From: Podarcis filfolensis
Taxonomy: Eukaryota
NCBI GenBank assembly: GCA_964270895.1
Contig: OZ185437.1
Strand: one strand, 5' to 3'
Length of the DNA: 64,000 bases
Shown piece by piece: positions 36,685 through 59,209 of the stretch. The notes under the pieces are model-generated. The model saw nothing but the letters and a program-made list of their open reading frames with translations. It was not told the DNA's origin and made no database searches. How positions within the stretch are numbered: position 1 is the stretch's first letter; every line of letters begins with the position of its first letter. A program made the position numbers and the translations under genes.

Positions 36685-36722
<38 letters not shown>
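36685..36722. repeat. (CA)n microsatellite
   Basis: Perfect CA run. Confidence 0.95.
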
Positions 36723-38255: not shown

Positions 38256-38301
38256 TACATATGCATGTGTTATATGCTAACATACAAAAATTATAGTTAC
38301 A

Positions 38302-38518
38302 GGTAGGTAGCCATGTTGGTCTGCCGTAGTCGAAACAAAATGAAAAGATTCCTTCCAGTAGCACCTTAGAGACCAACTACGTTTGTTATTGGTATGAGCT
38401 TTCGTGTGCATGCACACGTATCTGAAGAAGTGTGCATGCACACGAAAGCTCATACCAATAACAAACTTAGTTGGTCTCTAAGGTGCTACTGGAATGAATT
38501 TTTTTTATTTTGTTTCAA
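38302..38518. mobile_element. Penelope-like element remnant (inverted pseudo-LTR pair forming a long palindrome)
   Basis: 65-bp arms 38353-38417 and 38430-38494 with one mismatch; flanks ATACAAAAATTAT(A)GTTACA at 38282-38301 and 38519-38537; contains a hammerhead motif typical of PLE pLTRs. Confidence 0.75.
38418..38455 (+). ncRNA. minimal type I hammerhead ribozyme motif
   Basis: GTAT-CTGAAGA-A-GTGTGC(AT)GCACAC-GAA-AGCT-C-ATAC: helix I GTAT/ATAC, core CUGANGA, helix II, GAAA, palindromic helix III AGCT, CUC cleavage triplet. Confidence 0.7.
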
Positions 38519-39125
38519 ATACAAAAATTATGTTACACTGGAAGGGGGAAACCCAACCATTTCCAGTCTGTTTCTCTAGCTGCCTGAAAGGACAACATAC
38601 GAGAGCTTGTAAAGCAGCCCTTACAGAAACAATATTCAGCACTACAGAATACATATGTGTATTCTGGTTTTCTCAACAGGAAATACCTACATAAAATATC
38701 TCTTAATTCCTCTGTGACAGTGTATCTTCTGCATTATAAGCACTGCTAGGATTTTATATGCTAAATTCTAGAGACTAGTAGTTTGAACACTAACAATGGG
38801 AGATTTAACTACAATAATAATATGCAGTTCTTGTCAAATTGACACATTACATATGGACCAAAGAAGGTGGGCAATGCTTTTTATAAAGAATTGCCAGTCC
38901 TTTATTCATTCATTACTAGAAGGGTAAAACATACTCAATTCTGAATAGTGATCATGTACTTGGGATTTGTGCTGCCGTGTTTCTGTTACTGTCCTTGTGT
39001 ATGTTATTCGTTCTGATAACACAAATATCTCTTTCTTAGAAAAGTAATTTATTTTATTTATTCATTTCATTACACTGATGTTGGTATTAAAAGCTTTCCT
39101 GTTGGATAGTCAAATGGCAGTTTAC

Positions 39126-58891: not shown

Positions 58892-59135
58892 AGAAGAAGA
58901 GGAGTTTGGATTTGATATCCTGCCTTTCACTCCCTTTAAGGAGTCTCAAAGTGGCTAACATTCTCCTTTCCCTTCCTCCCCCACAACAAACACTCTGTGA
59001 GGTGAGTGGGGCTGAGAGACTTCAAAGAAGTGTGACTGGCCCAAGGTCACCCAGCAGCTGCATGTGGAGGAGCGGAGACCCGAACCCGGTTCCCCAGATT
59101 ACGAGACTACCGCTCTTAACCACTACACCACACTA
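58892..59135 (-). mobile_element. tRNA-derived MIR/CORE-type squamate SINE (Squam3-like)
   Basis: Minus strand AGTGTGGTGTAGTGGTTAAGAGCGGTAG A box, GGGTTC B-box region, CORE-like GGGTGACCTTGGGC, (TCT)n tail. Confidence 0.85.
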
Positions 59136-59209
59136 GCTTTTTATACTTTGTTATAAGCATTAAAAAACATAATGAATGTATATAGACACATTATCAAACC
59201 CTTACTTAC

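Follow-up and report, generated by a model that had tools for sequence, protein, structure and literature searches.

Metazoan Penelope-like elements (PLEs) carry minimal hammerhead ribozymes in their pseudo-LTRs (Cervera and de la Pena 2014, PMC4209133). These minimal hammerheads (min-HHRs) have an unpaired nucleotide between A9 and G10.1, a G10.1-C11.1 pair and palindromic positions 15.2-16.2, and they form consensus families with covariation (PMC4209133). Helix I is short (4-5 bp), helix II is long, pairs of motifs are found on opposite strands, and the group has been described in turtle and snakes (PMC4209133). Most min-HHRs are dispersed as single copies or as such opposite-strand pairs, and reptiles are among the reported carriers; cleavage by monomeric minimal hammerheads was undetectable, and dimers cleaved weakly (PMC4209133). 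The insertions left by PLEs are highly 5'-truncated, an inverted truncated copy often lies beside the direct copy, and a tail of 30-40 bp is often present at one end only (Craig et al., PMC8557442).

The mechanism behind such insertions has been studied in vitro with the protein of the Poseidon PLE of Anolis, which cleaves and extends both target strands and prefers AT-rich DNA with an ATT motif (PMC11167929). Reverse transcription begins at two internal start sites, one lying 111-118 nt inside the ORF, which is 85-92 nt downstream of the hammerhead cut, and the other further out, with the tail between them (PMC11167929). Insertion does not need ribozyme cleavage, and the hammerhead of this element cleaves only when its protein is present (PMC11167929). 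Two other systems invite comparison. The non-LTR retrozymes of animals, which carry type I hammerheads and, like the unit described here, are non-coding, have been proposed to be non-autonomous derivatives of PLE pseudo-LTRs, and their tandem repeats give circular RNAs (PMC7229834, bioRxiv 10.64898/2026.07.22.740005). Retrozymes are arranged head to tail, with two ribozymes per transcript, whereas the locus studied here has one motif and an inverted truncated partner, and no tandem copy of the unit was found in the 64 kb analysed. Hammerhead_HH9 and HH10 of amniotes are also intronic type I hammerheads in vertebrate genes, but these are canonical ribozymes of the sense strand, conserved across species, in which helix III is stable and the loops make tertiary contacts. 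The present motif differs from them in that it has no match to the Rfam hammerhead models, lies antisense and comes from a repeat family that is decaying.

A minimal hammerhead motif at 38418-38455

The window, by which we mean the whole 64-kb stretch of DNA that was analysed, reads GTAT CTGAAGA A GTGTGCATGCACAC GAAA GC T C ATAC at positions 38418-38455 of the plus strand. This is exactly what the original prediction had read element by element at the site. The elements are given below, those within the motif according to hammerhead numbering.

38418-38455, plus strand: complete minimal type I hammerhead motif (descriptor, simulations, fold and family consensus)
38418-38421 with 38452-38455, plus strand: helix I, GUAU/AUAC, 4 bp
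38422-38428, plus strand: C3-A9, CUGAAGA
38429, plus strand: extra unpaired A between A9 and G10.1
38430-38443, plus strand: helix II, 5 bp with a CAUG loop and the closing pair G10.1-C11.1 (G38430-C38443)
38444-38446, plus strand: G12 A13 A14
38447-38450, plus strand: A15.1 G15.2 C16.2 U16.1, palindromic AGCU helix III
38451, plus strand: C17

All positions of the core (C3 U4 G5 A6 N7 G8 A9, then G12 A13 A14 A15.1, then U16.1 H17) are present in 38422-38428 and 38444-38451, and the scissile bond is predicted to lie between C38451 and A38452. Loop 3 is absent from the 38-mer, and positions 15.2-16.2 are palindromic (A-GC-U, 38447-38450). Helix II is a perfect 14-nt palindrome, the stem of which could on paper be extended to 7 bp if the palindrome paired further. 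With the min-HHRs of PLEs the motif shares the type I topology, the CUGANGA/GAAA/H17 core, the 4-bp helix I, the lack of loop 3 and a helix III that can form only in a dimer. We found no structural difference between them, although helix II is slightly shorter here than in the Schistosoma families, where 7-8 bp are typical. The class assignment made in the original prediction is borne out by the extra nucleotide, the G10.1-C11.1 pair, the palindromic 15.2-16.2 positions and the helix lengths.

The Rfam hammerhead models (Hammerhead_1, _3, _II, HH9 and HH10) gave nothing at their gathering thresholds over the whole window, and nothing at E <= 10 on either 261 bases or 46 bases around the motif, so that the Infernal-type search with which the original prediction had proposed to verify the motif came back empty at both levels. 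Rfam is silent here because hammerheads without loop 3 are not captured by those models, and for this reason we used a purpose-written descriptor together with a simulation control. The descriptor demanded a minimum of 4 bp in helix I, the CUGANGA box with or without one additional nucleotide after it, a G..C-closed helix II likewise of 4 bp or more, GAAA, palindromic 15.2/16.2, U and H. It matched once on the two strands of the window, at 38418-38455, and revealed no second hammerhead motif on either strand. Applied to both strands of 400 simulated 64-kb windows (51 Mb), which were generated by a first-order Markov model with the dinucleotide composition of the window, it gave 0 matches, even when helix I was relaxed to 2 bp and the palindrome was made optional. 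Folded in isolation, the 38-mer adopts the hammerhead topology, helices I and II included, at its energy minimum (−6.8 kcal/mol), an energy that is ordinary relative to shuffled sequences (z = −0.44).

The silence of the Rfam hammerhead models and this unremarkable fold energy would suit the idea that the hammerhead-like string is a chance match in an unrelated palindromic repeat, such as a MITE. We consider this extremely improbable: the simulated sequence held no match to the descriptor, and the motif has features that a chance match would not need and that agree with the published consensus (PMC4209133). Moreover, the 38-mer equals the consensus of independent copies (see below). At the level of sequence, the 38-mer is confirmed as a real and complete minimal hammerhead motif of the PLE kind, a kind already described since 2014. 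Taken alone it is of little importance, being one more copy of a repeat class with thousands of minimal hammerheads across non-mammalian vertebrate genomes, as was shown in 2014.

Anatomy and origin of the insertion

The motif lies in an insertion of 217 bp (38302-38518) that is bounded by direct repeats at 38282-38301 and 38519-38537, and which is composed as follows.

38282-38301, no strand: left target-site duplication, 20 nt, 80% A+T, contains ATT (direct-repeat search, ends extended by eye)
38302-38417, minus strand: inverted 5'-truncated element copy, from helix II, without the CUGANGA box (arm alignment)
38302-38329, minus strand: 28-nt tail, in the inverted copy only, with the sense-orientation end ..GGCTACCTACC (arm alignment)
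38404-38417, no strand: helix II palindrome of the inverted copy, 14-nt self-complementary GTGTGCATGCACAC (direct repeat)
38418-38518, plus strand: direct element copy, hammerhead and 67 nt of the 3' module, tail-less, with the end ..GTTTCAA (arm alignment)
38519-38537, no strand: right target-site duplication, 19 nt (direct-repeat search and arm alignment)

The two copies of the target-site duplication differ by a single 1-nt indel (20 versus 19 nt). Around the motif runs an inverted repeat with 75-nt arms of 96% identity (38343-38417 and 38430-38504) and a spacer of 12 nt; when the arms are aligned to each other over their shared length, 83 of 88 positions are identical and there is one indel. 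Measured from helix II, the arms are 116 and 89 nt long. The right arm reaches 67 nt past the cut site, while the left copy continues for 94 nt after the mirrored cleavage site and, according to the arm alignment, overruns the end of the right copy by 27-28 nt. The left arm keeps helix II and GAAAGCUC-AUAC without a CUGANGA box, and there is accordingly no minus-strand twin of the motif. Beyond these two arms, no further copy of the unit was found within the 64-kb window. The cleavage site is read through in both arms, and therefore the RNA templates were uncleaved, which agrees with the finding that insertion of the Anolis element needs no cleavage (PMC11167929).

The inverted copy with its 5' truncation, the tail on one arm only and the long, AT-rich target-site duplication are all signatures of PLE insertions, and the original description of the site as a Penelope-like palindrome holds in this respect. 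The same anatomy speaks against a MITE or another DNA transposon as the carrier of a chance hammerhead match, since the 19/20-nt duplication, the unequal arms (116 versus 89 nt) and the one-sided tail do not suit an element with terminal inverted repeats and a fixed short duplication. A snap-back origin, in which the palindrome would have been self-primed, was also considered and rejected, because self-copying cannot yield an arm that exceeds its template by 28 nt.

We conclude that 38302-38518 is very probably a dead short insertion that was produced by PLE retrotransposition into an AT-rich intron site. Two cDNA copies of the 3' module of the element, comprising the hammerhead and about 70-95 nt, would have been synthesised in opposite orientations, each from one of the two cleaved strands of the target. 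The cDNA of the right arm would have begun at the inner start site of reverse transcription, leaving this arm tail-less, and that of the left arm at the outer start site, giving it the 28-nt tail. Joining of the two cDNAs head to head would then have generated the palindrome. The right copy would merely happen to extend to the 5' edge of helix I, so that the whole hammerhead was kept, while the left copy stopped at helix II. By analogy with the Anolis protein we infer both the two-strand priming and the two start sites at this insertion; the motif, the anatomy of the insertion, the family copies, their neutral decay and the folding energies were observed directly.

Compared with the in vitro system, the insertion appears to match the properties of the Anolis PLE in its opposite copies, its inner and outer ends, its AT-rich target and its uncleaved templates. 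The consensus of Poseidon_Ac (PAc, from Anolis carolinensis) has the same hammerhead architecture: helices I and II have 3 and 6 bp, the core boxes are CUGAGGA and GAAA, the additional nucleotide is a U, and a palindromic CG is followed by U and C17. Both PAc and the window insertion show an AT-rich, ATT-containing target and, presumably in the window as in PAc, priming from both strands. Here the two copies stop 67 and 94 nt downstream of the cut, as against a start at about 85-92 nt in PAc. The mapped PAc start (ACAACACA, consensus positions 107-118) directly follows ..UUCG, and by eye the same end is seen here. The tail-less form ends after ..UUUCG/A and the tail begins with ACUACGG... (38510-38518 versus 38329-38335). 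PAc and the unit may share a UUCG-type start-site motif, as judged from these short stretches; outside the core and this short UUCGAC-like motif the two have no evident sequence similarity. The insertion is a clean worked example, in a genome, of what was found for the Anolis PLE in vitro, namely priming on both strands, a pair of start sites that flank the tail, a target rich in A+T and uncut templates.

A further difference concerns coding capacity. The PAc ORF starts at stem II, whereas here the ATG in the helix II loop opens a frame through the unit (38404-38411 / 38436-38518), with a length of 36 codons in the left copy, and an open frame of this length is expected by chance in about 1 of 6 cases. 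When the frame of the helix II loop ATG was compared with 1.84 billion representative proteins, no PLE protein came up, and the matches were four short spurious ORFs with 71-85% identity. The candidate role of this ATG as a PLE ORF start, as in Poseidon_Ac, was rejected on the ground that its only matches were these short spurious proteins. The proteins (P0001, P0002, P0004 and P0006) are predictions of 106-146 aa that run across repeat copies in the assembly ERZ27260045, and they look spurious rather than like PLE products. Likewise, neither the window nor the protein search linked the unit to an ORF for a reverse transcriptase or GIY-YIG endonuclease, or to a named PLE consensus.

Related copies and their decay

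Pattern scans with a 17-mer gave only chance bacterial matches (genome_contigs) and one unrelated viral contig, and scans with a 23-mer and a gapped 24-base pattern had no matches in metagenome_contigs or viral_contigs. Related copies were reached through the spurious ORFs translated across the repeat, and from there through their source contigs. In this manner we obtained six more copies of the unit, with 81-95% identity, on four public contigs (L033-L036). This is a small set, and all four contigs come from one ENA assembly, ERZ27260045. Together with the two window arms, the alignment comprises 8 copies from 5 insertions. The first 17 nt of one contig (L034:1-17) are ATGTGTATAAGAGACAG, which looks to us like the Nextera transposase mosaic-end adapter and presumably means that this public assembly contains untrimmed adapter.

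All three palindromic insertions (window, L033 and L034) have one tail-less and one tail-bearing arm. The tail-less arms end with ..GTTTCR and the tail-bearing arms with ..GGCTACC. The long tail form is also present in L033_L, L035 and L036, and the tail of L034_R has an internal deletion. The breakpoints of the inverted copies vary: in the window the break is at the 5' edge of helix II, in L033 it is inside GAAA, and in L034 both hammerheads are whole. This variation between insertions indicates that the palindromes arise anew each time. It was also considered whether the arms were joined by annealing at the palindromic helix II, an idea that does not fit these two insertions, since the window has two copies of helix II with a 12-nt spacer and the L033 breakpoint lies inside GAAA.

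The hammerhead in the consensus of the eight copies is identical to the window 38-mer. Of six copies that cover the whole motif, two (window and L033) are intact and identical. The other four are altered: G12 is changed to A in L034_R; in L034_L helix II contains a mismatch and the helix III palindrome is gone; L035 shows U in place of C11.1 together with helix mismatches; and L036 is changed at C3, U4 and A13. Divergence from the consensus amounts to 4/82 positions in the core, to 13/264 when the entire motif is counted and to 30/480 for the 3' flank (Fisher p-values = 0.80 and 0.51). Among the eight copies, which are too few and too similar for an analysis of covariation, there are seven helix substitutions and no compensatory double changes. 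Inserted copies thus decay neutrally, without selection on the core. The original prediction had stated that core nucleotides no better conserved than their flanks would count against it, and to the letter this is what we observed, as the core changes as fast as the flank. The identification nevertheless stands, because dead retroposon copies are not expected to be under constraint, and the relevant signal for identification is the intact consensus rather than constraint on each copy. By the same reasoning, the window motif is unmutated because this copy still equals the family consensus and not because of selection at the locus. The locus serves as a warning that a perfect ribozyme motif inside a gene need not be functional, given that related copies lose core nucleotides at the rate of the flank.

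The alignment bears on another reading of the unit, according to which its 105-135 nt or so are the whole mobile element. The unit would then be a minimal non-autonomous retroposon made up of a hammerhead and a reverse-transcriptase entry module, with an RNA starting at helix I, and the hammerhead would mainly be part of a structure recognised by the protein. When the longest copy of each insertion is considered, similarity between copies begins 0-2 nt from the 5' edge of helix I in four of the five insertions, and what lies upstream of the unit differs, being an inverted copy in the window and L033 and the head of a SINE in L035 and L036. Also in keeping with this reading, the shortest active 5' truncation of the Anolis PLE template is at +20, inside the hammerhead region, and the protein-binding motif of that element lies within the first 172 nt after stem II (PMC11167929); in addition, the protein search found no PLE ORF that begins with the frame of the helix II loop. 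However, the sequence common to the L034 copies extends at least 8 nt upstream of helix I, the insertions number only five, with short contigs of a single assembly supplying four, and a discrete 5' end could also represent a stop of the reverse transcriptase. Moreover, the Anolis PLE template requires sequence 3' of the start sites that is not itself copied (PMC11167929), and units that end at a start site could therefore not be re-mobilised alone. On balance we consider it unlikely that the unit is a complete mobile element.

In two contigs a tRNA-derived SINE (head AGTGTGGTGTAGTGGTTAAGAGC...) adjoins the unit head to head at its 5' edge (L035:100-217 and L036:1-204, antisense). On the sense strand of L036 (positions 340-535), this SINE also directly follows the end of the unit tail. 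Next to an ankyrin exon at 58893-59137 of the window (minus strand) the same SINE stands alone; it has a 3' end of its own and lacks the unit. This solitary occurrence was the reason to reject the unit as the 3' end of the tRNA-derived SINE that adjoins it in L035 and L036. The exact junction at the first bases of the SINE possibly results from template switching or from two-strand priming with two RNAs. As a more speculative extension, to which we give somewhat less credence than to a complete mobile element as such, the unit of about 105-135 nt might be, in this genome, a minimal parasite of the PLE machinery that is recurrently joined, head to head, either to its own copy or to a tRNA-derived SINE at the 5' end of the latter. 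In that case the hammerhead would persist as part of the fold that the protein recognises and not as a nuclease, and the intronic palindromes could in addition act as sources of hairpin RNA. We retain the reading of 38302-38518 as a dead product of PLE retrotransposition in what follows.

Folding and expected behaviour at the locus

Over the full length of the element, the plus-strand RNA forms a hairpin of −149.2 kcal/mol, and when helices I and II of the ribozyme are enforced the fold reaches only −106.8 kcal/mol, which is 42 kcal/mol worse. This agrees with the expectation voiced in the original prediction that a transcript spanning the palindrome would sequester the core. The left arm also pairs with G12-A14 and C17; in the folding model it is a built-in antisense lock on the ribozyme. 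For the right copy alone, the ribozyme fold lies 3.7 kcal/mol above the minimum. The AGCU/AGCU duplex of helix III is worth only −2.5 kcal/mol, and two free 38-mers favour pairing through the 14-nt palindromic helix II (−25.2 kcal/mol).

The minus strand of the whole element also forms a hairpin (−139 kcal/mol), and the great stability of the hairpins on both strands fits the proposal that the palindrome has a role in the host as a hairpin RNA, from which small RNAs of the miRNA or siRNA type would be cut or which would be edited within the pre-mRNA, and in which the hammerhead would be incidental. Sub-threshold matches to Rfam miRNA models extend across the hairpin, among them MIR1222 (42.6 bits) and mir-466 (40.7 bits). 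However, all of these are far under the gathering scores (85-195 bits) on both strands, as would be the case for any long perfect hairpin, and the arms have diverged at 5 of 88 positions and by an indel, with no constraint visible. No miRNA precursor family was found at the Rfam gathering thresholds, the best match scoring 42.6 bits against a threshold of 90. We regard a host role of this kind as very unlikely. The sub-threshold matches, which include sno_ZL1 besides the miRNA models, cover 38358-38489 symmetrically on both strands, and are due to the long hairpin.

The ankyrin-repeat exons of the host gene, at 54-62 kb, match Pfam Ank on the minus strand, and the plus-strand motif is therefore antisense to the pre-mRNA, as originally proposed. 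A Pfam search of the two minus-strand ORFs that flank the element found nothing. The minus-strand ORFs at 39.1 and 35.6 kb look like the C-terminal half of KIDINS220. At this locus the motif should do nothing, because it is antisense to the host gene, has no partner motif and would be locked in the long hairpin of any transcript that spans the element. Ribozyme activity at 38418-38455 is unlikely, a judgement that follows from the literature on monomeric minimal hammerheads. The claim that this copy is catalytically intact consequently holds for its sequence but not for its likely behaviour in place, where a partner motif is absent from the window. The same intron region also contains a perfect (CA)19 microsatellite at 36685-36722.
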